From: Lepidodermella squamata
Lineage: Eukaryota; Animalia; Gastrotricha
Assembly (NCBI GenBank): GCA_047495785.1
Contig: JBLDXI010000001.1
Coordinates: 2,728,001 to 2,792,000, forward strand
Direction: 5' to 3'
DNA: 64,000 nt
Both the position numbers and the translations under genes were made by a program. The notes under the pieces were generated by a model. It saw only the letters and a program-made list of their open reading frames with translations, ran no database searches and was not told where the DNA came from. Shown here in pieces: positions 35,101-60,600 of this stretch (its first letter is position 1; each line of letters opens with the position of its first letter).

Positions 35101-37844
35101 TAGGCGGGCTAAGGATCGGGTCGTAGTCGGTCCATTTCGGTAAACGCACCGATTTGCACTGCTCTTCGCTCGGCCAATCGAAATCTTCAAAATACAGCGG
35201 CTTTTCGTAGGTCGACCACGCCCGATATAGCCAACGTGGCCCAATAAAATCTGGTTCCGTAAACTTATTGACTCGACCTGGTAACCTCGACACAACAGGT
35301 CTCACTTTTCTCGGATCAGCGTATTTACCAATGCCAAGTTTCGCCTCGAGTTTATCAGCCCAGAATGGTTGATGGTCAGGTGGCAGGAATGGGCTCGGGC
35401 ATTTTATACTCGACATAGGGTCGGTACTTTCAGCGTACTGGCAATACGTGATAGTACCTCGTCTCCGCTCAGTCTCCACCCAGTTCTTGTACACAATTTC
35501 TTGAACGGCGGCGAATTCGTCCGAAACTTGCTCATCCCGCATCTTACTGATTGTCCGCTGCAGTGCCATGAGCCTGGCTTGTTTAGATCGCAAGAGTGCT
35601 AGGGCAGATTCCCATTCTTTGGCTTGTTTGTTCAATGCAGTTACTAGAGCTTGACGGCACCGAACAGCGTGTAGCCGCAGTTGGGCTGAGGCGACGAGGC
35701 GGGGCTGAAGTTGTAGTGAGGCTTCGTAGTGGCGCGAGGCCTCGTCGTCGCGTTCGAGTGACGCCAATATGTTGGCGAGGGTAAAATGTAAAACACTAAG
35801 ACCGGGGCTCAGATCGAGCGCCCATTGCACGACGATCGCCGCGTCGTCAGACTGGCCATTGCGGTGCAGAATATTGCCAAGATTCAATAGAGGCTCTGAT
35901 TTGTATTTTCTGCAAGCAAAAGAAAAATCCATGATTTTTCCGAAAATGCAAGAATTCGAAATAATTGCGAACATTAAAGAAAAATTGCAAACAAAAACCT
36001 TCACATTTTCTCAGTCTAGGAATAATAAAATCCTTACGATCACAAATTTTGATAGATTCTACTTTGCAGCCAGAACAATTCAATATTTACGCAAGCTACT
36101 ATCCTTATCAAATTCGACTATCTAAATCCCAAATTTGGAGGATCGAATTGGGATTCATTTTGCCCAATCTTCAACAATCATCTCTTCCGAAGACGACTCT
36201 GTTTTACCATTTCCGACATTTCCGGAAAATAGTTGTTCACCAACTTTTTAGATAGATACCAAATCGTTCGTGGCGCGGAAGAACAAGCACTTCAAGCAAA
36301 AACCTAGTGCTAATGATGGGGTATTTTTTGCTTGAAGTGCTGGTCTTGTTTAGATTGCTTGTTCTTCCGCGCCACGAACGAAATATTTTTCAAGGGGCTT
36401 AGTTTTAGCGGAACCAAATTTTGTAATTTTCAATGGACCTAAATCTACTCTTCGAAACTTTCAAGGATATCAGGATTGATGACCATAATTTAGAATAAAT
36501 AATTATCTTCTAATTCAGCGGAAAATGCTGCATAAGACGCATTCTTTACTATAGAATAGATACATTGCCTGAATTTTGCATATTCGAACATATTCGAAAA
36601 GCGAGCCTTGGCTTATCTAAAAAATTAGGTTCCGCAACCTGCAGACTTGGTTCCGCTACAGTCAAATTTAGTTCCGCTCAAATATATTTGGTTTTTTTAT
36701 ATGTTTTATTTATAATGGGTCTGATAATCAACATCTTTCTTTTTATTTCCCCATAAATACTAAGTATTTTAAAATTCCCGATTCAATTCATAGAGCGTAA
36801 ATATAGACAATTTGTTCCGCTACCAGGTGAATAATTTAGCTCGCACTTGACATCGGACAATTTTTGTCCTACTAACCCGGTTAAAAAAAACAATCATTCA
36901 TTTATTTTCAATACCAATACCGCAACTACTGGTAGTTCTTTTGATAAAATTATGGTACATCCACTTACGTTGGGGCGTAATGAAGAGCTCGACGAAGGCA
37001 TTCAATAGACGCAGATGTATTCCCTTTCATTCTCCAGAAAAATGACGCCATCGAATAAGCTACCCAAGATTCTTGGTTCTGAATACATAGACAAATTTAG
37101 TAAGGCGAAAGGTTCAATAAAAACACGTCATACCCTTTTCAAAGTTTGCTGAATAGCATGTCCGAATTGGTCGACGGTCATTCCAGGCGGTACGACAACG
37201 CTCCTGAGTGCAGTCTCGGAAATCGAGGGCATTTTCTTGCGATTGCGTATACTCGACAAGTGTTCCATCGAATGCATAGAAAAGTCCATTTTGTGAGCCC
37301 AACACTTCGGTTCCTGGTACGGATTGGCCGGCTGTTGTTGGTGCAGCTTAGCTGACCCGCCTTTACCCGACGAAGGTGACAGCGACGTAGTAGCCATGTC
37401 TAATACACTGTGAACGTTGATATGATCCTCCAATTTCAAACCATAATGACTGAGCGGTAAAACAGTTGACGTGTAAAAATCAAATTCGTAGACAGGCTTG
37501 CCGGCCGCTTTGCAGTTGTCATCACTCTCCATCACCTCCTTTTGCAGGGACCAGATGTCGGTTTCATCGAGTCGAACACCTTCCTTAGGCTGCAGATCTT
37601 TAAGGTGGTCGCGGACGCTTTTCATTTCATTCGCGCGGTCCATTTGCTGAAACACCGCGGCCAGGTCGTAAGGCCGCCGTAGGGCAAATGCCGAGTCACG
37701 TGACGCTTGAATTCGGCCCCGTTCCGTCACTACCCAGTGCGTCATCGCATTGACGCCGCAAACAATCGTCAGAACAACGGTGATCAGGTGCAGGAAGAAG
37801 TCGGCGCCGCTTGAGGGGCATTTCATCATTGACAAGCGGACCAT
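32172..37844 (-). CDS. TTC17: Tetratricopeptide repeat protein 17; exons 37844-37134, 37078-36969, 35909-32660, 32375-32172
   Basis: Signal peptide followed by THWVVTERGRIQ...FALRRPYDL, FSMHSMEHL, SFFWRMKGN...CLRRALHYAP and repeated YWR..G...A..CL TPR modules. Confidence 0.9.
36264..36381. repeat. Short fold-back (hairpin) element in a TTC17 intron
   Basis: 26-bp perfect inverted termini TCGTTCGTGGCGCGGAAGAACAAGCA / TGCTTGTTCTTCCGCGCCACGAACGA, plus an inner inverted pair AGCACTTCAAGCAAAAA / TTTTTGCTTGAAGTGCT. Confidence 0.8.
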
Positions 37845-38152
37845 TTCTTTCTAGGTTGTTCAGTACGTGTGAATATCGAACAAGAAATAGCCACAACAGC
37901 TCACATTGCTAAATTAATAATTCAACTCTAAAAATAAGAAAAAGTCCAGAAATTGTAGAAAACGGTCGTTGGTATTTTTAAATACCGAGGCAAAAATCAC
38001 AGCTTAAAACTGGAGAAAAAGTTCAAACCGGCAGATTGAAAAAAAGAAATAGAAAACCCAGATTAAACACGAAAAATTCCACCTTAATCCCTCGAAATCA
38101 CTAATTTTAAGAGTTTAAACTGGGTTTCCTGAGAGGCAAGTTTAATCAAAAT

Positions 38153-40689
38153 TTAGGTGCGTTTCGGCGCATTATCGGCCGTCATTGAAAGCGAATATTG
38201 GCCACCGCTGAAATTCAACTGACCAGCAGCCACCTTACTGTCGAGAAATATCTTCAACTGAGCGGCTGTCATATCAGGCGGTGAGTTGTTGGCGACTGTA
38301 AAAGCTCGCAGCATTTGAACGATGCGTTCCAAGCTCAACGTATGCAAATTCGTCAAAATTCCGACAACGTACAACCAGAAAACTTGCAGTTCTTGCTCCT
38401 TTTGCCGCGCGACTGAAACTGTCATCGCAGCTTCGGCCTGCTCACCCTCGCCGCCATTCGCAGACGCGGACATGGCTGATGTGATGATGTCTCCTGTGGC
38501 GGATGCGCCGGTTGACGGTCGTCTCGAGACGAGTTCAAAAATTTCCGGTTCAACCTCTTGTAGAATCTGCCGACCCATCCAATAGACTAAACGTTGGCGG
38601 CAAACTGGAGTGGGCAATTCACAAGCGGCTGCCAATTCAGCTAGCGACCACTTAGGCCTGCGTGAGAGTAAAAAAATTTCGTATTAAATATTTAACAAGA
38701 TGGGTGTTTTTCTTTGAATAAATAATGATACCCCGTATGTAATTTTGTATTCGAAATGCTGCTAAAATGAACATTTTCGAGCGAAACAAGCGAGAAATTT
38801 CATACAAATTCGTCGAACTATGAGGCTGTACAGCTAATTCTTCTTTTGAAGTAAAAGCTAGCTAACGTGACTCAATTTTCTATCATCAGCTGAACATAAC
38901 ACTATAAAGGCATCTTGACTTAAAACCCCACTCACTTTTCAAAAAACATGTAGAGAAGGACGGCATAGACCGGCGTGGCTGACACCTCAAGCTTAGACCC
39001 ATCGTTGTACTCCAGTTCGAGGGTAACACTGCCACAATGAGCCTGCCAGTCGATGGCACGTTGGCGCTTATGAGAAGGGAACGCCTCGGCCAGGGACCGA
39101 AGAACAGCATCCATAGATTCGGGTAGATGCAGATTGTCCTCCTTTAACGGTGGCCAATATTGGTCTGAGATGATGAGGAATGAAAACGCGATTCCGGGGA
39201 ATTTTCGAAGAGGGCCGCAGCTCGGGTCTGTTACCAAACTGCTGGTATTAGCCGAGTTCCACGCCGCGGCGAAAGATTCAGAATTTTGGACGTCATTCAA
39301 CATTACATCACAGTTCGACAGGGTAGAATCACCCACGACGCGTTTTAACAGATCCAACTGGGCTTGTTGTTCGGAAATCGGGCAATTAGCCCCGGCGTCA
39401 GTGGTTAGCAACCTCTCGGCTAGAAGATTCGTATATTCGACAGCAAACGCCTTTCTCGAGCCGAATATTGAGACTAGCGAGTCGACAACATCACCGCCCT
39501 TTGGTAACAGGTTTCGATGTCTGGGTTCAGGGCGCCATTGCCGCCAAGCTGCGTCGAAATCTTCGCCCTGGTCGGTCATCGAAAGGCTACTCAGAATTTG
39601 AGGATCGTCTATTAGGCACTGAACAACAGCTCGAATAGCATCGGCGCGGAGGCGAAGGTATTTTTGGAAGAGTAGAACAACGTGATCGGTGAAATAGCCG
39701 CGAGCCACCTTATCGAGTACGGAAAGGCCTCGAACCAGTTGAACATACGTCGATAAGACCTCGGCAGTCGGGACTCCAGGGTTGAAAACCAGGGTTTCAA
39801 TATCGGATGCCAATCTCTTCAGGAGTTTCGGGCTGAAATTTTTATCCGCTTCGAGAAGTGAAGCCAGATCTTTCAGAGCAGCTTCGGAAGACGGGTAGCG
39901 AGATAAAGTTCGATACGCAGTTGCCATATGCATATTAAACGCGACTTGTTTGAACAGTCGCGGAATAGAATCGCACGAAAAAGCGAGTGGTGATTCGGCG
40001 AAGGAAGGCGCGGCTTGAGCGATGAAGTTCAAAAAAGCTGTGCACAGATCGATGAAAGAGTCAACTGTAGGTTTTATTGCATTTCCGGAATACGTTGCGG
40101 TGAAAAGCGACGCCGATAGATTCAACGTGATGAAATTAGAAAAAACCTCGCTGAGATCAGCAAACGCTTCCAGGCAGAACCCGCAATCGCTGAGAAGAAA
40201 CGTCAAAGTTGTTGATGTTAGCGATAAAATTTCCGGGCAGAAACATGATGCAGTTACGCAGAACTCGGTGTGGACGCTCAAATTCGACGAAGAATTCGCG
40301 AGAGCTGACAACGCATTAGTCAGCATGTTTTCGACGATTTTATTCAAATCAGCCGGCGGATTGCAGATCAAAACACCGCCGGCGTATTTGAGCAGTTCAG
40401 CGTTGTACTGTTCTGGGTTTGGTAGACCGCAATCGTTGAGAACTGCGGTGATATTTCGGCGAATCGCGTTGAACATTTCAACAACTTGCCGCATTCGCAG
40501 CAGTTTGTCATCGAAAGCACCGGATCGCTGGAAACCACCGATGAGCTGTTGAATAATGCGACCGATTCGTTCTTTCGAAGCTTTTAGCGTCGCCTTGACC
40601 GGCGTTGCACCGGGCATTGATTTCAACAAAGCGCTGAGATTGGGGTTTGTTGCCATGGCTAGCGATAGCGGCGCGGCTATTTCAGTCAT
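38153..40689 (-). CDS. ANAPC2: Anaphase-promoting complex subunit 2 (cullin-like); exons 40689-38936, 38657-38153
   Basis: Motifs FNPGVPTAEVLSTYV, YLRLRADAIRAVV, WRPEP, DVVDSLVSIFGSRKAFAVEYTNLLAERLL and CDVMLNDV; C-terminal winged helix FWLYVVGILTN..LSLERI. Confidence 0.92.
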
Positions 40690-42120
40690 CCTGATAAGGT
40701 GAAAAATGCAACATTAGTGAAAACTTTTCGGGCAAGATGACTAACTGCTAGTAATTATCATGCCGCGCGTGAAAGGTGAGCAGGCTGCGTAGGACGAAAC
40801 ACGTTAAATTAGTGCAATCGATAGATAGTGTACAGCCTTCAAATCAATGAAGCTGCTGCAGCGACGCCACGTCAGCAGTGCGAAATGCGATAGGTCTGCC
40901 TATCAGCCTGACCGCTTGCAATGATTGGCATACATGTACGCAGGTAAAAAGTGGCGACTGTGCCGTGCAATAATCAGAATAATAATATAGCTCGAGCATT
41001 GAGGCGGAAACACCACATTTTTATGACAAATATCGGAGGTTGCTATGCGCACATTCGCGAAGACACGCTCAATCGATAACCCGCGTGCGCCAAAATACCT
41101 ATAGCTCAAATAATGCCGGCGCAGTCAGTGATTCACCGCGCGAGGAAAATTCGATAAAAACAACTACTTTTCCGCAATAATTAAACAGTAAAAATCACCA
41201 TATATGTGCACGCGCACTTTACCTGCATTTTTCCTGGTAGATAGCGAGCTCGGTAGGTATATTTGTAGTGAGTCACCTTAATGCATCAGCGCGACGTGTT
41301 TATCTTCCGATCTATACATATATATACACGCATCCATCTCTCTACTGCAAAAACAATATTGCGAAAAATTAATCTAGGGAGCAAGGGGTCGTGTCTCTTA
41401 GAGATAGTGAATAGGCGAAAAATTAAGCGCCGACAGAAATTTTTCAGTATAAGCACACAGTCCGAAAAAAAAACAGCGCGACCATAAAATGAAAAATAAG
41501 CATGACTCATATCGCAAATGAAAGAAATAACTTTAGGTTTCGGTGCATGAATTCTACTATATGCATTACTATTGAAAAGCTGAACAAACATATTATAGTC
41601 GACTTACCTCAACCGCCCAAGTAGCCGGTCAGTTAATTAATTATATCAAAGATTAGATCTAATAATGCAGAAAAAAATGATGTTCATGAATTTTTTCATA
41701 AATTAATTTAACAAGTCGATTTTAAAATTCCGATTCTCAATCGCGGATATACAAATTTCAAAAAATTAACAATATTCAACCGATTGCCTTTCACCCTTTT
41801 CAGTAATCATTGGAAAAATGTTCATTGATTCAATATCATATTAGGCAGCTTTTATATATACAGCGAAGAAATTAATCGTCGAATTTTTTGTAAAAAAAAG
41901 CCTCGATATTTCTCAACGTTCGCAAAGGTAATTCGCATCAGGCCGAATCATTTAAGCAAAAATAGCGGTGGAATTCAGCACAAACATCATCCGTCATAAA
42001 TCACACCGGCTTTCATGTGTAGGGCAGAATTGAGCATAAGATAATCATTGCATTATACAGTTACAATTAATATTGCGAAATCACAAGTAGAAGCACAATT
42101 TGAACTATTTAGCGTTCTAT

Positions 42121-45100
42121 TTATTTCTTATTGGCAAACCAATCATCCTCGTCGTCATCGTCATCGTCGCCAAAAAGAGCCCCGCCTCGGGTAGTAGGCA
42201 CAGGCGGTGGAGGCGCTTTGTTGTTCGCGGCTTCGGGTGACTCATCTTGGTCGTCGATTTTACTTTGGTCCAACAGTGACAAATTGTTATCGCTATTATT
42301 TGCTGGCAGTTTTTCAGCGGTAGGAGCTGGAGCTGGAGGCATTGCCGAAAACATATCCTGCAATCAATACAAATTAAATTATAAAAATGGGAGAAACGAC
42401 TTACAAAGCACAAAAAATACGATTAGGTGTTGAAAAAATATTAAATTGCGCGCAGAAAAAATGAAATAAAAAATTGAGGCGCGTGCGAGGTCGCGAGCCA
42501 CCAAAATAGCGCTCCGAAATAGCACGTGTTCAGAAAATTGATGATAACCTCAATAATCGAAATTCTGAAATCAAATTAGCAGCCAATTTGTCAACAGGTT
42601 GAAGCCTTGATAGCTAATTCTAGGCTCAGAATAATTTCGTACAATTAGGATCAAGTCCAGTTCTGAACTTTGGCGAGGGCGGTCGTACGACAATCGAGTA
42701 GGCTCGCTCAAATACAAGCGCCTGTTTCAACAAAGGCCTAAAACGCCGCCAAAAACTTGCACCGAATATGCGTGAATAAGGCAATTAAAAATATGAAACG
42801 CATTATCTTCAGTTTTTTTCACTAAACTGTGAAATTAAAAATACAACATGGGTGCGCAAGGAGGACTGAAATAGTTTGACGTATATTTTGGTTAATAGTT
42901 CAAAAAAACGTGACTCGAAATAGAGATGAAACTTGAGATGGATAGCATTCAATCGAAGAAATATATACCTCCATGTCTGAATCAGAATCGTCGCCGAAGA
43001 GCGATTCTTTTTTCTTTGACGGTTCTTCCTTCGGAACTGAAGATTCAGTGGAGGATTCAGGCTGCGCGGTGTGTTCCTCTTCGTTTGATGGAAGCTCCGG
43101 TTCTGGTGCCGCTGCGGGTTCCGGCTCCGGCACCGGCTCCGGCTCCGGCTGGCTGGGCTCTTCTTTCTCCTCCGGTTCGGGGAGCGATTCCTCTACAGGG
43201 GGAGGATTGCTGGAAGACAAAGGATCTTCAGGGACTTCTTCCTGAATCGCCGGCGGCTCGTCAACTTCCTCAGACTTATCCTCGGAAATTTCTTCAACTT
43301 TCTCCTCGACAGCGGGAACTTCCGGTGTTTCTAGTTGTTCAACTTCAGGAGTTTCTGATTGCTCGACTTGCTCGTCAGCAATCTCATCAGACGCCTGGTC
43401 GCTATTTTCTTGATTTTGCTGCGAAGGGGATGGTTCTGGAGTCTCCATTGTGACTTGCAATGGATCAAAGGCAGGAGGCTCGTTACGCTCATCGTCAGCG
43501 GTTTCTTGATCCTCCTCAACATCAGGGTTACCCTTAGCATCCTCGGGCACAACATGATCACGATGGACAGGAGTGATAGTGGGCTCCTCGGTGGCACCTT
43601 CGGGTGTTATATACACAGGAGCAATACCGCGGGGATAATCGCTCGAATCCTCATCTTGCTGTGGCTCATATTCTCTAGCGTCGTTTTCTTCTTGAAGTGA
43701 ATGATCGGAAACATCTCCATTTTCAACAACAGCGTATGACGACCCCTCGCTGTCCCTGGCAGTTGGTTCCGGGGGCTGTTCCTCATTTACCTCCGGTTTC
43801 TCTGGCTCCGCTGGCTCAGGAGGCGCTTGTTTTTCATGAACTTCATTGATTAAGGTGGGGGCAGCGACAGGTACTGGGACTTCCTCCCTTTCGATGGCCT
43901 TAGCGGGTGGGACAACCGCAGGAGCAGCAGAATTTCCACTCAAGAAGTTCAAAGTAGTCTGCTTAATGACAGCTAGCAACGTTTTCAGCACCTCTGCGCC
44001 TAAGTATTCACTCTCGTTCGAAATGGAGCCTCTCGAGGACTGATACACCTGGTTCATTATCGTTTTGACTTGCTTCGAAACTTTTGCCTCGACATCAGCT
44101 GGCGATAACGCTGATTGGAATTGCTCACGTTCTTGCGCAATTTGAGCTTCGTGCTGCTCGCGCATTAATTGCATTTTCGACTTGAGGGAGGAATTAACCT
44201 GTTTTGAGTCATCAAGCTGTCGCGTCAAGTCTTGAACTTGCGACGTCAAAGCATGAACTTCGGCAGATTTTGCGCGCAAATCCTGACCAACTCGCTCACG
44301 ATCGGCAATAATTTCCTGAATTTCGCCCATTTTCGCCTTCAATTGCTCGCTGAGACGATCGCCGTTTGATCGCGATACTAAAATATCGTTCTGCAACCGG
44401 CTGATTTCGTCTTCGAGGGATCGAATTCGACCAGATGAAGCAGTTTGGTCTTCACTAGCCTTGCTAAGCAAATCTGTTAGACTAGAATCCTTGGCGGATA
44501 GAGCTGCTTGGGTCATTTCAAGTTGCTTCTTCAAATCCGCGATTTCGGTTTGAAGAACCGCAACACGACGCCTTTCGGTCGTTAATTCACCCGTAGCCAG
44601 CGACTCTGAATCTTTCGCAGCGGCGGCTTCTTGCTGCATTTTCTTGACAGATTCAGCCGATTCTTCAACGGTTTTCGCAGCGGCCGCGACTGATTCTTTC
44701 ATCGAAATCACTTCGTTACGTAAATCAAGCTCAGCACGTCGTTTTTCTGCGACCAACAGGTGGAGATCGCCGACTTCAGCGGTTAGCGTGCTAACTCGCA
44801 GGGCAAGAGCAGCTTTTTCTTCCTCCAATTGCAAAACGCGACCCGCCGTTTGCGCAGCCGAGGTTGAAAGCGCGTCACTTCTATCTGAAAGAGCTCGGTT
44901 CGACTGTTCAATCAATTTTTGCTTATCGATAAGCAACTCGGAGACGCGTAAATTCAAGTCTTCAATTTTCGACTGGCGAGCTTTCAAATCTTCACGAAGC
45001 CGCTCTTCCTCGGCAACCATGCGTTGCAGGGCTCCGAGAACAGCTCGGCCGTCCAGCGTTCCACCCGCGACTTCAATAGCAGCTGAAGACTGAATCGAAT

Positions 45101-46524
45101 GCTGATGTTGCTGCTCGATTTTTTGTCCGATATTATCAAGTTTGTCCTGCATTTTCGACAGAGCAACCCGCATTTCTGTACTGTTTTGCCGCGTTTCCAT
45201 GAACAAAACGCTCCATTCGGGCCGCTGAGCCTCTTGCTGCTGCGGTATAGGACTAGCAACCTCCTGGACATACTGCTGTTGCTGTGGCGTGTAAACGGGC
45301 GATTGATATAAAGCGACCTGCTTACTGGTAGCTAAGGCCGTTTGAGGTACTAAAGTGGGTATCGCCACTCCGGTAGCACCAATCATAACCCCGGGAGTAC
45401 CAGGTACCGCAGTTTGGGTCCGGTAGACCGGCGGTTGCTGTTGTTGCTCAGTTTTCGCTCGCCTTTGCTTCGAAGGAGAGGATGTTGGCACTGAAACACT
45501 CTCAGAATCTGAGTAGCCCTCCTCCTGTTCACCATGCTGTCCACCCGCTGGTTCAGGACCGGGAAATACGTGCTGGCCTAACTTAGCCATTCTCGATAGA
45601 ATACCACCCCGGCCTGATGATTGAGACGAGTCCAAATCACCCGCAATCGATGGCTCAGCAGCAGACCTGGAAGACGGGCCTTTCGCTCTCAGAACAGTAA
45701 CGTCATAAACCAGGAAATTTCCGTCATTCTGTAACTGGGCAGCGATCCTGCGACCGCCAGGAGTTGCCATTCCAACAACAATTTGACTCAAGCCAACTTT
45801 AGCCGCGGAAGCTTTCAATTTAAATTTCTGCTCCGACTGACTTTGAACCGCGGTACTAGCACCATTTGAGGCTAAATTGAACGCGACATAGTTACATTCG
45901 ACCTTGTAACCGTCAGCGATAACTTCGGGATTTTCCCCACCGAGCAACACGTCTTGTAAAACCAATGTCTGCTTCGCATTCGATAACGTCCTGGCTACGG
46001 TGATTTCGAAACAAAATTTCGCCAGGCTATCGGGCGTGTCGAAGCGGGCGGCCCAGTTGCAACCGGTATCGTCGTAGAATGAGCCGTAATTATCGGCGCG
46101 AACAATAAATTTGAACTTTTCTCCGACCATGGTTAGAGTCAGCGGTAATTTCTCGCCTTTTGGACCTTGTTTATACATGATGAGGATATATTGCCGGGAG
46201 GCGGCGACTCCGAGCAACGAAATGCCGACTTTCCCTTGTGACTGGTATTGGTCGCCTACGAATTTGAAGCAATCGACAGCCATAGCGACCATGGGCTTGG
46301 CTTGAGCTAACAAAGCAGCTGCTTGGTTGGTAGCACCAGTATTTTGCTGAGCTTGGACTTGTTGCGTTGTTGAGCTTATCGAAGCTGAAGCCGGTCTCGC
46401 CGAGCCAAACGGGACTGCGGCCAATCCAGATGTCGGACTATGAAAAAACTATTATAACAAAATCCTCCTTAATTTTTAAGAAAACTCACCCAGAAAAGTC
46501 AACGTCGTCATCCTCGTACGACAT
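42121..46524 (-). CDS. FKBP15: FKBP15-like protein (degenerate FKBP domain, coiled coil, acidic tail); exons 46524-46490, 46437-42969, 42357-42121
   Basis: N-terminus DDDVDF, YGSFYDDTGCNWAARF, FMETRQNSTEMRVALSKMQDKLD, VKTIMNQVYQ and C-terminus LFGDDDDDEDDWF. Confidence 0.88.
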
Positions 46525-46654
46525 GACACACAAAATTCAATCAAAAACTAAAAATTGAAAAGTTGATTGTACATCTTTGAGTATATCATATATTTCTTAT
46601 AAATGAAAGCCTATGGAGGTAGAAGAGCAGAAAAATAAAACAATTATTCATCTA

Positions 46655-48613
46655 CTAGGATGCTCGAACACCAGTAGCAGCTCTGTTGATTGCGTCCATA
46701 AGTTTGTTTTCGTCAACATCTTCAAAGATATCGCCCTTTTTTGACGACGTTTTCACTTGCAGTTTAATGTTACGATCAAATTGTTTGTTATTATTGTCAA
46801 CAATGCGATCGCCAACAATTCGAACCTCCGAATTTTTACCAATCATTTTCAAGTCGTGAGCCGCGGCGAGACGGTCGATAACTTGCCGTTCGACTTCGTA
46901 TTTAATCGAACGAGCGCCGTAGTGAACGTTGTAGCCATCGGCGAGAATGTCGAGAGCTGAGCGGTCCCAGGTTAGTTTAATTTGATGGCGTTTCAGCGCC
47001 CGGTCGGCCCATAGATTGAGTTCTTTCGCCACCAATTGCATCAATTCACGACGGCTGAATGGCAAAAAGTAGACGAATTCATTGATTCTTCCCAGAAATT
47101 CGTCCCGTTTGAAATGCGACTTCAATATCGGTCGAATGACGTTTTCTTTGAATTTTTTCGAAACCCAAACAGGCTGAGGCTCGTCTGACGAGCTCTCTGC
47201 CTCTTCCAACACCTGCCTTCCGTCATTTTCATCGCGCAATCGTTGGGAATAGCTGGCAATTTCGTCACTGGCTAGATTGGACGTCATGATGAAAATTGCT
47301 TTCGTGCAAACGATTGTCTTCCCTTTGCCATCAGTCAAACGACCTTCGTCGAAAAGTTGAAGTAAGACTGTCAGAACATCAGGATGAGCCTTTTCAATCT
47401 ATAAAAAAACGTCAATTTCGCAATTTTGAATTTTGGGAAGTCTCACCTCATCAAAAAGCACAATGGAATTCGGAAACGCCTCCAATTTTCCGGTTAATTG
47501 ACCGCCTTCATCGTGGCCGATATATCCAGGGGGAGATCCTATTAACCGCGCAACACTGTGCTTTTCCTGGTATTCAGACATATCCAAGCGAATGAAGCCT
47601 TTTGTACCAGAACCGGTGTCTTTATCAGCATCTTTTTTCGATTCTTTCGAAGACTTTACCAAATGCACTGCAACTTGCTTGGCAAGCTCGGTTTTACCAA
47701 TACCGGAAGACCCGAGGAATAACATGACTAGCGGGTGCTCGTCATCAGCCCAGCCCGACTGCCAGCGTCGAATAGCTGCTGATACAGTTCGAATCGCCGC
47801 CTCCTGCCCGACTAAACTTTCCCGCAATCGCTTCTCTAAGGGGTATCTCAAACGTTCAGCCGCCTCTAATTCATGCTTTTGACTGTCAAATTTCGTTTCA
47901 TATTCAACCAAACGATCGTGTAAAGCATCGTCTAATACGTAATCTGAGGGCCGATAGCCCATGTCATTTTCTATGGTAGGATCGGCGCCTGCGTCCAATA
48001 ACGCTGCGATTATGTGTTCATTTTTCACATTCACAGCATAATGAAGGGCGGTACAGCCGCGAAATGTAGTTCGGTTCGTATTAAGGTGGTACCGATCCGA
48101 GAATTCAGCATCTCGCCAAAGCATAATTTCCAGCGGCGAAACTCCCAATTCCTGCGCTTTGTCGTAAATGTTAGTGAAATAATCGCCGAGGTTAGGGTCA
48201 GCGCCGGCTGATAACAGCGCAACTATGGCTTCGAAATGACCCGACGCAACGGCCAAATGTAACGGAGTCCAGCCGAGTTGGTGGCGGCAATTTACGTCCA
48301 CGTTACCCGACGCCACAATCTGCTTAATCTTGTCAACAGAATTGCTTCGAACGGCTTCAAATAATTGTTTCTCATTGCCAGAATTATCGTTATTTTTCCG
48401 CCGATTCTTACGTGGAGGAGGTGGAGGCTCCAAGAATGACGCTGCCAATGTGACAAAACCTAGTCCGGTAAGCAGCTTCAACCGATTTTTCGGCGGATCT
48501 CTCCTTTCCCTATTTCTGTTGCTCCATTTATACGACGCGTAGGACAATAACCGTGGATTGCTCCGAGTTGACCGAAGAGCTGAAAGACTTCTTGATACAA
48601 TACGACTTAACAT
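46655..48613 (-). CDS. CLPB: Mitochondrial disaggregase CLPB/Skd3 (ankyrin repeats plus AAA+); exons 48613-47447, 47398-46655
   Basis: Arg/Ser-rich presequence, [12 protein letters not shown], Walker [37 protein letters not shown] and [12 protein letters not shown]. Confidence 0.96.
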
Positions 48614-48744
48614 TTCTAGAAGAATACGAAAAAATTCGGCGTAATTTTTCTTGGAAGAACGACACTTTTTCTTGGAATGCTCATCTTAAATTTTCGCGCG
48701 TAACGACGCAACATTTTTTGTAGAATTTATGATAGGTTTCTATT

Positions 48745-50131
48745 TCAAGCAGATGAAACGCGGCTGGTGATTGCAAGGGCAGCGCTGTGCGTCGCATGCG
48801 CCGCGGCGGCCTCAGTTGAGGTGTTAGAACCAGGTTTCTCAGAGAAATCATCCAGCAGCAGATCGACTTGAACGCGCATCTGGTTCAAGCGGCGTTGAAT
48901 TTCGCGCCACTGCTCCATGCCAGAGCCAACGTAATGGCTCCACATGAGCGCCAACACGCGGACCCGTTTACCACCCTGGTCCAAACGGAGACGCGCCAAA
49001 CCAGTCTTAACGACTAAAAAATCCATTTAATAAACAATTCACCTCAATTTTAGAAATTTACCATCCAAGAGGAAAGGCTCGACTTTGTTGACGTCAATAT
49101 CGACTTTTTTGGCAACAACTTCGTAGGTCAACTCGGTTTTACCCTCGGCAAGGTGCAGGAAGGAAAGAACGCGGAGTTTGGCAATAGTAACATCACGACC
49201 GAGGCCGAGACCGTCTAGGAAAGCACCATTATCCTTCAAGAACTTGTTGTACTCGTCGACTGAGCCACGCATCAAAATCATCAACAGGTCATGGATACGC
49301 TCGCCTTCCAGCATTTGAACCGGTTTCAAATGCGTCAGAGAATCGAAGTTGTAGATTATAGAGTCGCTGATGTGAGCAACGATGCATTCGGTGGCTTCTT
49401 GTTTCACGGTTGGCGCAACGTCCTCGGGTACACCTTTCAATAGCTCAACCAAACATTCGCGAACTCGCTCCCTAGAGTGGAAATGGAGCTCACTGAAAGC
49501 CTGATCAAATCTGTCTCTGAACTCACTTTTGGTTAGATGCCTTGAAAACGACGATGACTGCGCGCCAAATTGACATTTTTTCGGCCGGTTTCAAATTCCA
49601 TTCGCCGATGAAATCATTAATCTGATCGGCCGTGCTCGGGAAGCTGCCGAGCAGTTTATGCTTAGCGGCCCATTCGAAGACAGCAATGAAGCTCTTCGTA
49701 AAGAGGGCGGACTGGTCTTGAGGAATTTTGACTAAGAGATTAGTAAGCAATTTGAGGCGCAACGAGAACTGAATAGCATCCATAGTTTCACATCGGATTG
49801 TCAGTGAGGCGATGAGCGCGTTAACAGCTTCAACCAATTCAGCTCGGTTGTTTTTTGACGTCACAACGACCAGAATGCTATGCAAAACCATGTCAATTGC
49901 TGTGAAAGAATTTAAATTGGTAAACAGAAATGTCAAAAGGCGTGAAAATTTACATTTAAAGGTTGGGACTTTGCCCAAAACCTTCTCCAGCAACTCGATT
50001 AGCTGTAGAGCTGTTACTTCTTCAGGCTTCTCCACCTTAAGTGTTGAATCAACCGCTTTCAAACATTCGACGATGTCAGCGGTTTGAGCAGCAGTCGTAA
50101 CATCAGGATCGGTGAAAACGTAAACAGACAT
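48745..50131 (-). CDS. EIF3M: Eukaryotic translation initiation factor 3 subunit M (PCI domain), 4 exons
   Basis: Motifs MSVYVFTD, FDSLTHLKPVQMLEGERIHDLL, KLRVLSFLHLAE, VEPFLLD-VVKTGLARLRLDQ and QWREIQRRL. Confidence 0.85.
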
Positions 50132-50343
50132 CTTCAAAATTAAGGTGGCCTAAAATAACAAAAATCTGCAATTAAATGTCACATCGATTTATAGAACAAA
50201 AGACAGAATAAATCGGATTTTTAAATGTGAAAATACCACCGGGTCGAGAATATAATGCAGGCAACAAAATTAAGTTACAATTTTGAAATCAATAATTTTC
50301 ACTTGAATGAAATAGAATGATGGATAACTATAGCTAATGAAGC

Positions 50344-51783
50344 TTATGCACGTAAGAAAGCAATGCCATCTTCAGATCCTGAATCGTCGTCTTCCTCAAA
50401 CTGATCGTCGTCACCACTAGCATCCGAGTCGTCGTCGTCTGAATCAGCCTCATCAGCGTTCTCAATATTGAGTCCCTCAAACAAACGCCCAACACATCCA
50501 CCCCCAACCATCGAATAGTGAGCATACGGATCGTTTCGATCAAGCACGCTATTGCATAACCAGCAGAAATAGGTGTGACACTTGGTACAAGACATCTTAT
50601 TGCAACCTTCGATCTTTTGACACCAAGCTTTACAGGAAGGACACTTGCGACAATTTTCTTTAATGAAGGAATTCGAATCGTATTCTTCGATTGCCTGTTT
50701 TATCGCAACTCTGCCAAATCGCTCCTCAAGTTCCTGTTTTTTACCCTCATCGCCGGCGAGATACTCAGCCCTTAGCTCCTCGATTTCACTTTCGTTCAGC
50801 TTACAGGGCGATACACCGTGATAAGTTCTGCGACAGTATACACAAAACACTAAAGTACACGAAGGGCAAGTTCCGGATGTCGATCCTTTGTCGTAAATTA
50901 CAGGATATTGACATGTGGGGCGAGGGCAGTAAGCCAAATCGCCTATATCATCCAGGCCCAACTTTAACAGCAATGTATCGTAACGAGCATACGATGTTTT
51001 ATCAACCACACTGCGGACGAGAGACTCGGTAGCGACGGTTTCACATTTTTCAGCAGGGCAATTCATTTCACGAACGTTTCCTTCTTGAATCTTGTTCTTG
51101 AAGTAGTCACCAAGGCATGCTTTGCAAAACAAGTGACGACACGGCTTGATCACAGCGGCACTTTTGCCAATCCTATCACATAAACATATTGTGCATGAAA
51201 AAGGAGTCGAAAGCAAATCGGCAGCTTCTTGCTCGATGTCGAACTGCTCACACGCTCGCATGCGATCTGCAGCAGAAGCTACTGAGACGTCTAAGTTAGA
51301 AGATTGTTCGACTTTTTGGAGCACCTTTCGCAAGAAGACATCGCATTCCTTGGCAACAGCAGATAAATCAATCGGCGACTCGATTTTCAACAAATCGCGT
51401 GCTTCGTCTTTCAAGAACATAAACCACAAAAAGAGAATTTCCATATCTGGATTTTCTGAAGCGATATCGATCAGCCTGTCGCGAATAGTGATGAGCTGCA
51501 ATGGCCGAAGCCAGCAACATGCTAACGTGAAATTGGGCTTTTCGGCATGAGGATATTCCGTCGGCAGCGTAAAATAGAGGTATATCGGTGGAAGATAATT
51601 AACGTCGAGGGATTTTGATATAGAACCATCAACTTTGGTAACAAATGTAAATGGTGAATCCAATTTGAAATGACAGGAGTAACAGCCCGAGTAAAGTCCT
51701 GTTTCTGAGTGCTTATTGACAGACAAATCGGCACTCTCGTAAATGCTAGTCAACGCAACAATTTCACCGTCTTGGCGGTCCAT
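50344..51783 (-). CDS. RNF14: RWD-RBR E3 ubiquitin ligase RNF14/ARA54, intronless
   Basis: RWD domain QDGEIVALTSIY...YLPPIYLYFTLPTEYP; RING1 CTICL..CRHLFCKAC; IBR YCPRPTC; RING2 KCPSCKAWCQKIEGCNKMSCTKCHTYFCWLC; PYAHY. Confidence 0.95.
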   Translation of the reverse strand: MDRQDGEIVALTSIYESADLSVNKHSETGLYSGCYSCHFKLDSPFTFVTKVDGSISKSLDVNYLPPIYLYFTLPTEYPHAEKPNFTLACCWLRPLQLITIRDRLIDIASENPDMEILFLWFMFLKDEARDLLKIESPIDLSAVAKECDVFLRKVLQKVEQSSNLDVSVASAADRMRACEQFDIEQEAADLLSTPFSCTICLCDRIGKSAAVIKPCRHLFCKACLGDYFKNKIQEGNVREMNCPAEKCETVATESLVRSVVDKTSYARYDTLLLKLGLDDIGDLAYCPRPTCQYPVIYDKGSTSGTCPSCTLVFCVYCRRTYHGVSPCKLNESEIEELRAEYLAGDEGKKQELEERFGRVAIKQAIEEYDSNSFIKENCRKCPSCKAWCQKIEGCNKMSCTKCHTYFCWLCNSVLDRNDPYAHYSMVGGGCVGRLFEGLNIENADEADSDDDDSDASGDDDQFEEDDDSGSEDGIAFLRA

Positions 51784-52704
51784 GATATATTTATATCATA
51801 TCTAGAAAACAGAAAAAGAAGTCAAAATGCGAGTAAATCCGAAATATGGCATATTGAATACTTATTTTGCCTTTCGCCAACCATCAACACCCAAAATCTC
51901 CAATTGAGCGTGATTTTTGCGTTAGGCGTAGGTAACACAATGAACGCAAAGGGCATTTATTAAGCAAGAGTCTAAGAGTTGAGAGCTCAGCGACAAAATA
52001 TTCACTATTAAAAGAGCAAATAATCGGGTCCATTCAGTCGGGTTCCGTGGAAACACGAGTAACAAAATACTTGAACGGATAGGATTTTACAAATTGTTTT
52101 GTGTTGTATGTTGTACGAGCAAAAAAGGATCTCAACCCCTACGGTATGAATCCATGCGTATTATATTAACAAAAATAATAATGGCCTAATCCAGAAGATC
52201 ACTATTTATCATCGTTTATCAATTGATTGGTGTCATTTAGGGATATCGAATATCGAATATCGATAGGTGTCTGATGTCAGACCGAATTCTGAGCGGCGCA
52301 TTACGGGTCATGGGTCATGTTGTCTAAAATAACATGCATCTTGCACATATTGATCGAATATTGGCGAAAACGCGGATAGCGCAAATATCCACCATAGTCC
52401 ATGATAACTGAAGCTAAATAGGTGCGAATTTGAACCCTACGGAAAACCCTCAATCCAGGATTTGCTGAAAAACGGTTCCGAAAAGCAACAAAAAACGGCC
52501 ACCGGATAGCGGCTAGGATCATTCATGCTTGACGTTTATTAAAATTTTAATCATTCACCTAAATTAACAGTTTGTTTTGTCTAAAAAACAATATTACAAA
52601 ATCTTAAGCGTCCTTAGCAATTTATGGTCCTCCTTGAATTTTTTAGCCCCGGTAAAGCCAATCGAAACAGATAATTCAAATACCTATATCTGCAACATAA
52701 CGCG

Positions 52705-55700
52705 ATGGTATGCTTAGTAGAACTAAATCAACCTTTCGTCTAATTTTTGATGTTAACAGCCGCCGAAAAAGGACGGTAAAGTTTCGGGTAATTCTACGGC
52801 CGTCGGATCTAGCAAGAAGAAAGCGCAAGAAGATGTTTTGCGCAAGTTAGCGGAAGAGGGTAAGATTTATTCATAAAATTGTCTTATTCATCTATTTCAG
52901 TCTTCTTATTTGTGATTTCATAAATTTGTCAGTGAATTCTAACGCAGCTATGCCTACTGCCAGGGAATTACATATGAAAAAATTGGGTACATGCAGAATA
53001 TTCACATATCGTCGTTTCAGTCACTCTTTAGTTGCAGTAAAATATATCTACTGAGGTTATCTAGAATTATTTAGAGTTATAATTCACCTATTTTTTGGTT
53101 ATATATACATTGCATCACAGGATAAACTAAATTCAGTCACTTATCAATAGATGTCGATATGATTTGCCTAATCTAAACCTTCATATGTTTGCGTCTTTAC
53201 AGAGGAAGCTCGGAAGAAAGCGGAGGAGGAAGAAAGAGATCGAAAGCGCCGAGAAGCAGAGCAGTTGGCAAAAAACAAGGAAACCGCAAAACTAGTTTGT
53301 ATTTTTGGCTTATCTCACAAGTTTGGTATTATATGAAATCGCCATTAATTATTACAGGAGAAAAAGCTGAGACGCGTTCAGTTAGGAGAGCTTGAGGCCA
53401 TCATCGATTACAACAAATCGTGCTCTGATCGAGTTGAAACTGAGCGCAGGCATACGGCTAAGGTAGTCTTAAAATCATGGCAAATTGGTTTCATGTGATG
53501 AGGCTATATTTATTTTTAGTGGAATCGCTATCTTAGGTGTGATGGGACTCCCGATCCAACAATTCCGGCTGAAATAAATACTTACATAAACTTGCTACTC
53601 GAAGAGCCTCGTTCTGATGTGGACGATGCATTTACAAAGTGCAAAGTGCTGCTCTCGGTATGAAATATTCTTGACTAGAAGTTGCTTTGAGTTGATTAGA
53701 TCGTTCTATCTTTAGCTAGTAGAAGAACTTAGTTTCATCATAAACGATACGCCAGCGGACCAAATTTCACCTGAGGCTTTGGAACAGTATAAAATGGTAA
53801 GCAATCATGCTATATCAGCTGAAATCGCTAATTTCTTTGCGTAGACGTTGGCGAGATTGGAATGCCTAATACAGTACAAACTCGATCAAGCTACTTACGA
53901 TGAGCTAATTCATGCATCAGAAAACGTGAATCCAGAAACTTCGAACTTGGAAAGAACGCTACGCGCACAGGAAATCATCGCTCTATGCATTTGGGGCAAT
54001 TTAATTAAGAACCCTAGGTAAGAAGAGCAAGGAAATGGCTGGAATTCGATTTCTAACTATTAGCCTTTTATAGGATTCGGTCGCACGATTTTCCTGATAT
54101 TGGCTTCACTTTCGAAATACCAAAGCCGATCGGCAATTCAAGCGTCGCTGTCAGAGTTTTGCACACTGCCTTCGATCATTGCTCTCATCTGACCAAAACA
54201 TTCTATCCAAAGAAAAAGATTGTTGAAGGTACGCTGCAGTTACTTTTTAGCGCTAAATGATGTCAACCCCTCGTTTTATGTTTTCAGTTGTGGAACAAAA
54301 GCCAGTCGTCGTTGTCGAGGAAAAACCCGCTACGGTTCCAACTAGTCAGCAAAAGGAAGACTCTCAAGAAGACGAGGTTTTTCATTCAAAACCTATATTG
54401 AAATATGAACTGTTTAGAGTATTTGATCTAAATTTTCCGCAGACAAAGTCGCACGCTAGCGAAGAATCTAGCGAATTAGTTAGTTGGTAGAAAAATGCAT
54501 GCTGTAGCGTCAGTAGATGAATTTCGTTGTTTCTGTGCGTAGCTGATCGCGAAATGCGAGTTTTACCTAATATTGTTGTCTCGTAGAAATACGTTTGAAA
54601 ATATAGCTGTTAGTGAATAGTCTGTAGCAGGAATGTAGAATTTTGATGACGATTTCGAAAATTATTTGCTTAGGATATCCTCGCTCAACTGAACTTTCTC
54701 GAGAAACCGAAAAAGGAGAAAACGGAAGATAAAGTCATCGTTGAAGAGGAAGAACCAGAGTACGATGATGCACCTACGCCTCGTGAGTTTTGTTGTTTAT
54801 AACCAAAATTATGTTCGTAATTTCAATAATTATCCAGCGCCCGAGGAATACGAAGACTACGAGGAACTCATCGATGTCGTTGATTTGCGGCAGAACCAGC
54901 CAGTTGGGGGCATTTTCCACATCAACTTGTTGCAGCTACCGCCTCAGCCGAAAACGGTGAAAAATTGGACAATCCGATTGCTACAATCACCGGCACAGTT
55001 GCATTTTGTCGACTACGTTGCAACTACAACGCATTATTACCCTGTCGCTGTTTCACTTGCTGGGCCAATGTCGGAAACGTTGAATTTTGCCCTTGGTTTT
55101 TCCAGAATGCAATACACTTTAGGTTTGTTTTGCTTGAAGCTTCTAAATTCGCTTAAATTTTATTTTGCGATGATAAGACGAAGAGGAAATTAAAAACATG
55201 GCTGGTCTCTTTCCGCTCTTGGGTATTCCAGAGCGGAAAGGTATAGGCGTTGCTCCGCCTAGGAAGAGGTTAATTTACAAGGAAGAAGAGGCTAATTTGG
55301 ATGGAAGTGAAATGCCTCGCGAAAGCAAAACCATGGACTCGATTCCAGATATCCCAATTCCAAAACCGCACGATCCTCCTGTTGCCGATCCCGAAATCCC
55401 GTCGAAAGTTGAAAATATTGAAAAATCTGAAACGATGGTGCTGAAATCCGAGCCAAGTAAACCGGAGGTGGAGCCAGGACTAGAGGCAGAGGTCACGAAT
55501 CAAGAAAACGAGCAAGAAAACACCGAAGATTTCGATCCTGATAGGCAAGAGACTTCGCTAATCGATGTCGATAATTTAGACGACGGAACCGGCGATAATC
55601 AACCTGAACAAGAGGCTGGCGAGGAGGAAAACCCGAAAAGCTCTTGGCTCGGCGATTTACTCGAGCAGCCAGTTGTTGGCCAGGAAATAATGCTAACACC

Positions 55701-57694: not shown

Positions 57695-60600
57695 TTAAAG
57701 TTGCAAAGATTCGAAATACTTCGCATCGTTCGCTTCTTCCTTATCACCAACGACCTTGCTTCGTACAAACTTGCACAGCTGATCGATTTCGGCCTTGATT
57801 TCGTTCAGCTCAGCGACCTGTTTCTCATCAATGCTATCAGCTGATGATTTGATTCGAGCCGAGATTGAACTATTCACGAATAAATGACGTAGACAGGCTA
57901 AGAATCGGCGAGCTGAATCGAGAGTTCGCGCATCCGTCAATTTCTGCGATAAACGAACGCATTCAAGAGCAGCTAATTGAAAATTCGACTCGCGATCTTC
58001 GACTTCTTTCAGAGATTTCGAGCGTAGAGTGACGTCGAGTAATTTTTCAAGGCCAGCCAGAAGTCGACCAGCCAGTTGTTTTGTTGAATTAGCCGTTGTA
58101 GTTAGCAACATGGTCGAACAGAAAAGACGCAAAACATTCGACAAAGCTTCGCCGTTCAGATTTTTCAAATGATTATCCGTCAGTTCTTTCGTTTTGTTCG
58201 TGACATCGATAAACTCAGCATCAACGCCCAGTTTTTTCACGGCCGATGACGACGCTTCGCCAGCTTCATCGCCCGACTGCTGGCCAAGCCATTGGCATAA
58301 CCGGTTTAGAAAATCGTCGAAAGCCGTGAAAAGCTCGTCTGAGTGGCGCTTTTCGCCGGCTTCAGCAAAAATATCGATGACTGTTGTAAGGGCTTTATAA
58401 GCCACGACGGCATACTCGAGTTGAGATTTTCGAGATTCGCGAATCAATGCGCTGACGATCAATGATTGAAGATCCGAATTGAACTTCGAAGCACCAACTT
58501 TTTGCACAAATTTGATCAAAACCTGAAAATAAGAGAAAATACATATAAAAATGACTATGATCTTAAATATTTGCGAAAAACTAAGTTAAACTACTAGAAT
58601 CGAGGACAGAATTACCCTGGACAAGCATGGCTTGTTTTTTTCAAATGAATAGCAACGGCAAACGATAAAAATGTCATACAACATCATAAAATGACCTTCC
58701 TTACCAGCTTTCGAATGGCGCAAAGCTCAATATAATTAGAGCGATAGCCAATTTTTGAAAAAATTCTTGAAGTTTTTGAAATCGATCAATTGCTGAAAAA
58801 TTGTATGAAGGATGAATAGCTCAAGAACTCACAAGACACTATGCAAATGAGCTTATGCATAAATGTTCAAGAGAGTGGCTATTCGCACATATCATGTACA
58901 ACAAAATTGCTATTCGTACATATCGGAAATAATATTAATAGAACACTGGAATCAACCGGTATAACTTGAAAAGCACTTTTGATCATGAAACAAACGGAAC
59001 GTCCGAATATTCCGACCGAAACTGGAAAAGCTGCACGGAAATGTGGGTTAAGCATTTTCGAAACAACCTTGAGACGACGGATGAGAACGCCACCAGCCGA
59101 GCAGAGGGATCCTTCGGCAGCTTAAAAGTCATTCTGCAAGCCACGCTGGGAAAATAGCCCAAAATCGAAGCCACAGTTCCAGCTGTCTGCGAGACAATTC
59201 GCGCCAAACGAATTCAGCCTGTCTCTGACGAGTTCGAAAACGTCCTGTACAAGGCATCATTTGCAGTTTCATCGTTAGCTGTTAAGAAGTACTTTCAGCA
59301 ATTGAAGGCTCTTAAAACTGTCGAATACAAAAAGTTGTCGGCGCCCGTGGCAGCGGGTCGAGCAATTGTTGGATATCTGCCTGCAAGCGATCGAGGTTTT
59401 CAATTCCATAACATCGGAGACTGTCACTGGGTTCTACTCTGGAAGGCAAGGTCCAGGTGTTCGACTCTATATCAGGGGGTGTTCCTGCATCTTTAGCGAA
59501 GCAGTTGATGGACAAATACAGAGTTCTCGCGGAGAATGGTAGCAATCCGTTGATCTTGAACGATGCCAGAAGCAGGATAATCTGCTCGACTGTGGTGTGT
59601 TCGCCGTTGCGTTTTTATGCGAGATACTGCTCGACGGAAATCCTTTGGCCGCTATTTTCGACAAGTCGAAGATGCGAGCACATTTGATCAATTGTTTGGA
59701 GAATCAAAGCCTGGAGCGATTCCCTGCTACTAAGAAAAAGGGGCGCACGCCCGCCTTAATATGCTGGTCTCTGCTTAAATCATGCATTCATTATTTCGCA
59801 TATGTACGAATAGCAACACCCAATGTTCAAATTGCCCAAAAATTGGGAGAAATGCAGATTGATGAGATTCCGCCCATCATTTCCGAATTTTCTAAATTAT
59901 TCTCTTCAGAAAGTAACCCCACGTTACAGTATGATGAATTTCATTTTCAAGGAAAAATAGTAGAATATTACCTCTAGAATGGTTTCTTTATTCGGCCAAG
60001 TTCGACCCTGAAGAAGTGGTAAAAGGCAACCACTCATCAGCCGTTGAACCTGAGCTTCCGTCAAGTGATTCGCCAGTCGCTCGCCAATCGTCTCCACCGC
60101 AATTGCAGTCTGAAGCCTCAGGCCGTAACGTTGCGTTTCCGCACATTTTGCCAGCAATTCACAGGTTGGATCGGCATATTTGCGCAAAGCAGCCTCCGTG
60201 CCTTGACTCACAACTTCTGTCCAAATATCGTCCCAAGGGTCGTTGGACGGCGGGTTCGGCAGGCGGCGCCATTGTTGTGTCCGCTCGTCTTCAGCAACTG
60301 CTTTCTCGTGCATGGCAAAATGCAAAACTGGGACAAGAGAAGCTTGAATTTCATCGGCTTGGAGCAACTCGCCAGGGCTGTATTGAGTCAAGGATTTCAA
60401 TAGGGAACACGCAGCTTTCGCCAGCATAGGGTCACTGTCATCGCCCAGTTGTAAGGCTCCCTTCAAATACCACTCCGATGCTTTGGTAGCGGCTTTTCGA
60501 ACCAGACTTTCCGGCCTCAAGCAAGCGATTTGAGCTGCCGCTGTGCCAGCTAAAATTGAGAAATCAGATACATGTAAATTGACAGCGATTCAGCATTCAT

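Follow-up and report, generated by a model that had tools for sequence, protein, structure and literature searches.

Are the four closely spaced genes for RNF14, eIF3m, CLPB and FKBP15 in the gastrotrich Lepidodermella squamata transcribed independently, or are they read as one precursor from which the individual messages are released by trans-splicing? The question is raised by a run of co-oriented genes on the minus strand of a 64,000-nucleotide (nt) stretch of contig JBLDXI010000001.1 (GenBank assembly GCA_047495785.1, positions 2,728,001 to 2,792,000), referred to below as the window and used for all coordinates unless another source is given. A preliminary description had proposed that these genes form a polycistronic operon, possibly extending to the two genes that follow, ANAPC2 and TTC17. 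The analysis presented here makes it probable, with some reservation, that the four genes constitute one transcription unit, organised as an operon of the spliced-leader (SL) type. That the genes are co-transcribed, and that a leader is added at precisely these acceptors, is what we infer from the spacing of the genes, the signals ahead of their start codons and the comparison with a distant relative.

The window is eukaryotic DNA, with a G+C content of about 38-51% in 2-kb windows and introns of about 50 nt. Gene identities were established by Pfam domain matches and by comparison with Protein Data Bank (PDB) chains, the spliced genes being queried exon by exon. Direct reading of the minus strand gives the order RNF14, eIF3m, CLPB and FKBP15, all in the same orientation:

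50344 to 51783, minus strand: RNF14-like RBR E3 ligase gene, a single exon encoding 479 amino acids, ATG at 51783, stop codon at 50346-50344
48745 to 50131, minus strand: eIF3m gene, ATG at 50131, stop codon at 48747-48745, exons 50131-49954, 49899-49527, 49471-49062 and 49013-48745
46655 to 48613, minus strand: gene of CLPB, the ankyrin-repeat mitochondrial disaggregase, ATG at 48613, stop codon at 46657-46655, exons 48613-47447 and 47398-46655
42121 to 46524, minus strand: FKBP15-like gene, exons 46524-46490, 46437-42969 and 42357-42121, Pfam FKBP15 (PF23649)

The RNF14 product displays the succession of an RWD domain and a RING1-IBR-RING2 module (RWD 3-127, zf-RING_2 196-243, IBR 267-327, IBR_1 376-412), and its named relatives carry the RNF14 annotation. 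The eIF3m gene, interrupted by introns of 54, 55 and 48 nt, gives a weak Pfam PCI match, and its third exon matches the eIF3 subunit M chains of the PDB with E = 6e-23. In CLPB, the ankyrin repeats are followed by AAA_2 and then by ClpB_D2-small, a single 48-nt intron splits the Walker B motif (FDE/IEKAHPDV), and the named relatives are annotated as mitochondrial disaggregase or CLPB. The last exon of FKBP15 is kept in the distant relative described below. The second intron of this gene (42358-42968, minus strand) is, with 611 nt, about ten times longer than usual here and unique in the genome; its counterpart in the relative measures 43 nt.

The spacers between stop codon and next ATG measure 212, 131 and 130 nt, have a G+C content of 25-33%, and each contains a T-rich tract followed by AG shortly before the downstream start codon; a similar signal precedes RNF14:

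51802 to 51820, minus strand: pyrimidine tract and TAG acceptor ahead of RNF14, 18 nt from the ATG
50132 to 50343, minus strand: spacer 1 (RNF14-eIF3m), 212 nt, acceptor G at 50150, weak donor-like GTGAAA at 50302, TATAAA 36 nt before the AG
48614 to 48744, minus strand: spacer 2 (eIF3m-CLPB), 131 nt, acceptor G at 48616, devoid of a donor-like site, AAGAAA 29 nt before the AG
46525 to 46654, minus strand: spacer 3 (CLPB-FKBP15), 130 nt, acceptor G at 46548, devoid of a donor-like site upstream of the acceptor

The AG dinucleotides lie at 51803-51802, 50151-50150, 48617-48616 and 46549-46548, respectively 18, 18, 2 and 23 nt ahead of the ATG of RNF14, eIF3m, CLPB and FKBP15, and all of them belong to a TAG. 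The gene identities, the common orientation, the spacer lengths and the acceptor positions given in the preliminary description are thus all borne out, by the Pfam and PDB matches for the genes and by direct reading of the strand for the rest. Its further statement that the spacers show no donor of consensus strength largely holds, a lax donor rule retrieving the weak GTGAAA at 50302 in spacer 1. As this is the sole donor-like site upstream of an acceptor across the spacers of the window, the acceptors are left without a cis partner. The eIF3m-CLPB spacer also harbours a short upstream open reading frame (48617-48685, minus strand), whose ATG at 48685 is in frame with CLPB and whose stop codon is the candidate acceptor TAG itself; trans-splicing at this site would drop it from the mature message.

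The frequency of such acceptors was evaluated with a strict rule, calibrated on hand-curated introns, requiring a YAG with no fewer than 8 pyrimidines, 6 or more of them T, in the 12 nt before it; 4 of the 9 curated cis-acceptors pass it. RNF14, eIF3m, CLPB, FKBP15 and ANAPC2 each have a single site satisfying this rule within the 120 nt ahead of their ATG, in every case at a distance of 1-23 nt. Per 25 nt, the background probability of a match is 0.066 over the whole window and reaches at most 0.115 where the non-coding DNA is AT-rich; given this background rate, the occurrence of a near-ATG acceptor at five genes out of six has a probability of 7e-6 to 1e-4. Acceptors close to the start codon are therefore more numerous than expected by chance. 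TAG is used by 10 of the 11 candidate trans-acceptors versus 4 of the 9 curated cis-acceptors (Fisher P = 0.05).

A comparison was made possible by a single related species retrieved on metagenome contigs of the European Nucleotide Archive (ENA) from three independent samples (L001/L034, L003 and L033), L001 and L003 being 99.1% identical; two scans of metagenome contigs of the Joint Genome Institute (JGI), using RNF14 and eIF3m alignments, did not reveal further relatives. The species is distant, with protein identities of 50% for RNF14, 68% for eIF3m exon 3, 63-71% for CLPB and 43-54% for FKBP15, the next-best database match of the latter being at most 31% identical. Intron positions differ between the two species, and the alignment of their non-coding DNA gave nothing above noise. 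The relative keeps gene order and strand, with spacers of 106 nt (RNF14-eIF3m), 158 nt (eIF3m-CLPB) and 94 nt (CLPB-FKBP15), in none of which the lax rule detects a donor-like site. TAG acceptors are located 18, 11 and 33 nt before the ATG of its eIF3m, CLPB and FKBP15, the distance at eIF3m being equal to that in the window and the acceptor of CLPB falling below the strict rule; no strict-rule acceptor was found ahead of its RNF14. Over both species, 61-194 nt separate the stop codons from the next acceptors, a distance that includes the upstream 3' untranslated region (UTR). The lowest value, 61 nt between the CLPB stop codon and the FKBP15 acceptor of the relative, allows little space for a promoter in addition to a 3' UTR. 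The two spacing classes are kept in both species, with tight spacers of 94-212 nt and a wide gap of 1.2-1.4 kb behind FKBP15.

These data are consistent with the following scheme, in which transcription would start upstream of RNF14, in the region separating it from a divergent gene:

51784 to 52704, no strand: head-to-head intergenic region between RNF14 and the divergent gene, 921 nt, unique in the genome, presumed to act as the bidirectional promoter of the run

From there, it would cross all four genes; the release of each downstream message would couple the formation of the 3' end of the upstream cistron with the trans-splicing of a capped leader at the TAG acceptor located 2-23 nt ahead of the next ATG. 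The unit would terminate at FKBP15, whose stop codon (42123-42121) is contained in the run's one canonical AATAAA (42125-42120). Behind the gap of about 1.4 kb, ANAPC2 and TTC17 would make up a second, separate tight pair.

A scheme of this kind calls for a leader, and candidate leader genes are present in the genome. The ribosomal DNA (rDNA) unit, of 8,460 bp, carries in its spacer a 5S gene and two paralogous modules located on the strand opposite to the 18S/28S genes. Both modules contain an exon of 32-33 nt that starts with AAATATCTGCG and ends with ...CTGAG/GTTAGT or ...CTAAG/GTATGA, followed by a GT donor, an Sm-like AUUUU(G/A) site, a 3' hairpin and a T-run, features by which they resemble SL RNA genes, their function as leaders being putative. 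When the genome was searched at the DNA level with these modules, only the rDNA copies were recovered, and patterns built on the exon prefix and the donor yielded nothing beyond two unrelated sites and a single-copy orphan on contig C9. The orphan (G000:C9:579852-579883, minus strand) is related to module A of the rDNA; its exon, AAATATCTGCGAGTGAATTATAACTCTCAG, measures 30 nt and runs into GTTAGTATC. A clear Sm site is missing, and the orphan probably represents a leader gene copy that has decayed or diverged. In the rDNA spacer (G000:C2; L010 4170-6322), a 32-nt motif ending in CCACATGCACRTGGTCATTGGCGAC has two copies, one located about 25 nt ahead of the 5S gene and the other between the modules, where it stands upstream of no recognisable gene. 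A bdelloid rotifer leader, searched as a pattern, is absent from the genome (121.2 Mb, 151 contigs) even when two mismatches are allowed. One conceivable reading is that one of the two modules supplies a specialised leader to the downstream genes of this and similar runs and that another leader class serves promoter-proximal genes; this we regard as improbable. If true, it would represent a division of labour resembling that of SL1 and SL2, arisen independently of nematodes.

Several observations weigh against a single four-gene unit resolved by a leader. The strict acceptor rule was devised post hoc, with the sites already known, the relative providing the fairer test. No canonical AATAAA was found in any spacer; five of the six spacers of the two species contain variant A-rich hexamers only, 21-43 nt before the AG, and such hexamers are common in AT-rich DNA. 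The rDNA modules have no folding advantage over shuffled sequence (z = -0.6 and 0.0). Same-species products were not found for RNF14 by exact look-up and word search, for CLPB (exon 1) and eIF3m (stop-free 5' part) by word searches, or for FKBP15 by comparing its large exon with cluster representatives. The collinearity with the relative continues past the cluster, through ANAPC2 and TTC17 to a convergent JmjC/Cupin_8 gene, so that the conserved order is not specific to an operon; what is operon-specific in the synteny is that the tight spacers remain tight and the wide gap remains wide. Finally, the ATG-to-ATG distance of the head-to-head region is reduced to about 243 nt in the relative, which indicates that promoters can be compact here.

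The last two points feed the explanation that survives best beside the operon, according to which the genes are independent and tightly packed, each with a compact promoter that lies in the spacer or overlaps either the spacer or the upstream gene's end, and no polycistronic precursor is made. It would allow trans-splicing at the acceptors, as for monocistronic genes in animals using a leader. The short region holding the RNF14 promoter in the relative keeps this explanation alive, and the extended collinearity means that synteny needs no operon. Moreover, RNF14 and ANAPC2, each at the beginning of a run, also have ATG-adjacent acceptors in the window, hence an acceptor alone does not mark a downstream cistron. 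Against it, the 61-194 nt between stop codon and acceptor would have to accommodate the 3' UTR and poly(A) signal of the upstream gene in addition to a promoter, whereas more than 1.2 kb is kept in both species ahead of ANAPC2, a plausible start of a new unit. In the relative, the first gene lacks a strong acceptor and the downstream genes have acceptors, that of CLPB being below the strict rule. We consider independent compact promoters unlikely on this balance, while leaving them an appreciable chance.

The preliminary description had left room for a unit reaching from RNF14 to TTC17, which brings in the features following FKBP15:

40690 to 42120, minus strand: wide gap FKBP15-ANAPC2, 1,431 nt, unique DNA, not similar to the relative at the coding level, presumed to hold the promoter/outron of ANAPC2
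38153 to 40689, minus strand: ANAPC2 gene, Pfam TPR_ANAPC2, Cullin and ANAPC2, CAG acceptor 1 nt before the ATG
32648 to 37844, minus strand: TTC17-like TPR gene, separated from ANAPC2 by 308 nt, its TAG acceptor, which passes the strict rule, having its G at 37928, 83 nt ahead of the ATG

The first exon of TTC17 is an open reading frame of 238 amino acids, and the N-terminus of the protein is 68% identical to that of the relative, in which the acceptor is about 67 nt before the corresponding Met. The distance from ANAPC2 to the called TTC17 start is 114 nt in the relative (about 180 nt to the likely Met). A single six-gene unit would account for the common orientation of all six genes (chance about 0.03), for their collinearity in the relative and for the acceptors upstream of the ATG of ANAPC2 and TTC17, but the gap behind FKBP15 is ten times larger than the other spacers and has retained its size (about 1.2 kb in the relative) and not its sequence, and the FKBP15 stop codon is embedded in the sole canonical AATAAA of the run. 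The proposed extension is consequently not upheld: ANAPC2 and TTC17 form a tight pair of their own, their inclusion in the same unit as the four-gene run is unlikely, and we hold a continuous unit from RNF14 through TTC17 to be highly improbable.

The least probable reading dispenses with trans-splicing altogether and sees in the pyrimidine-tract AGs either chance motifs or initiator or 5' UTR elements of genes that are merely close to each other, as the 25-33% G+C of the spacers, in which T-rich runs are common, the post hoc nature of the rule and the fact that a leader was seen on no transcript of this locus might suggest, but it is countered by the single, ATG-proximal motif in each of five upstream regions, by its recurrence at the counterparts of these genes in a relative with otherwise saturated non-coding DNA, by its invariable YAG ending, like that of cis-acceptors, and by the leader-RNA-like genes of the genome.

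The other side of the presumed promoter region is occupied by a divergent plus-strand gene (52705-53460), situated within a seemingly empty 2.9 kb. Its ATG (52705-52707) is directly followed by a GTATGC donor and a 52-nt intron, and because its first exon ends at this start codon the head-to-head distance amounts to 921 nt. The small exons encode a lysine-rich protein, MPPKKDGK...KKKAQEDVLRKLAEE...PTARELHMKKLG... This neighbour is also conserved upstream of RNF14 in the relative, where the position of its first intron is the same (L034 about 652-650, minus strand).

The searches for same-species transcripts and products, which included an exact look-up for SPT2, yielded nothing but other phyla and the relative, at 43-68% identity. 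Two Logan RNA-seq contigs (L031 848-3120, from SRR19411394, and L032 239-2511, from SRR12463347) show an intron-less arrangement in which CLPB begins 5-20 nt after a DIM1-family gene. They derive from another, GC-rich lineage, with a CLPB 51% identical to that of the window, and look like dicistronic transcripts involving a different partner gene. Elsewhere in the window, the minus strand at 7506-7619 matches the potassium-channel RNA editing signal of Rfam (K_chan_RES) over its full length, scoring 87 bits for a cut-off of 51; the match falls within a Kv-type channel gene (BTB_2 and Ion_trans, open reading frame 7691-8779). At 57695-58519, also on the minus strand, an open reading frame of 274 amino acids bears a weak, sub-threshold resemblance to the nucleocapsid family of tenuiviruses and phleboviruses (Tenui_N, E = 1.5e-4) and may represent a viral fragment of endogenous kind.

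A small number of animal groups, nematodes, tunicates and flatworms among them, are known to possess operons resolved by a spliced leader. We found no report of trans-splicing or operons in gastrotrichs in the approximately 8.4 million full-text papers and preprints searched, and the genome paper of L. squamata (PMC11660948) mentions neither of them. The kind of system proposed here is thus already known, while the phylum would be new within this literature. If RNA confirms the unit, it would provide a clean and deeply conserved example of an operon in a phylum close to flatworms, bringing together four genes with roles in the control of translation and of protein quality behind a presumed shared head-to-head promoter region, with a second pair following. 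Such an example would help to date the origins of operons among Spiralia and to correct the gene models of this genome.

Nematode operons of the Caenorhabditis elegans type are resolved via SL2/SL1 trans-splicing. The L. squamata run resembles them by its co-oriented and functionally unrelated housekeeping genes, its spacers of roughly 100-200 nt, the acceptors just ahead of the downstream ATGs, the single promoter region before the first gene, here presumed, and the linkage of leader RNA genes, here leader-like modules, to 5S rRNA genes. It differs from them in that there is no sign of a specialised SL2-type downstream leader, in the shorter distance from stop codon to acceptor (61-194 nt including the 3' UTR), in the lack of a canonical AATAAA at the internal genes and in the phylum concerned. 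In Ciona, Oikopleura and Schistosoma, a single leader class resolves operons with very short intercistronic regions. The operons of the Ciona type often have almost no intercistronic sequence, unlike the spacers described here, and the leaders of flatworms, the group usually placed as sister to gastrotrichs, end in AUG, whereas the leader-like exons of the rDNA end in ...CTGAG and ...CTAAG, without AUG. With the SL operons of tunicates and flatworms, the run nevertheless shares the setting of a compact genome, short introns and very short intercistronic regions.

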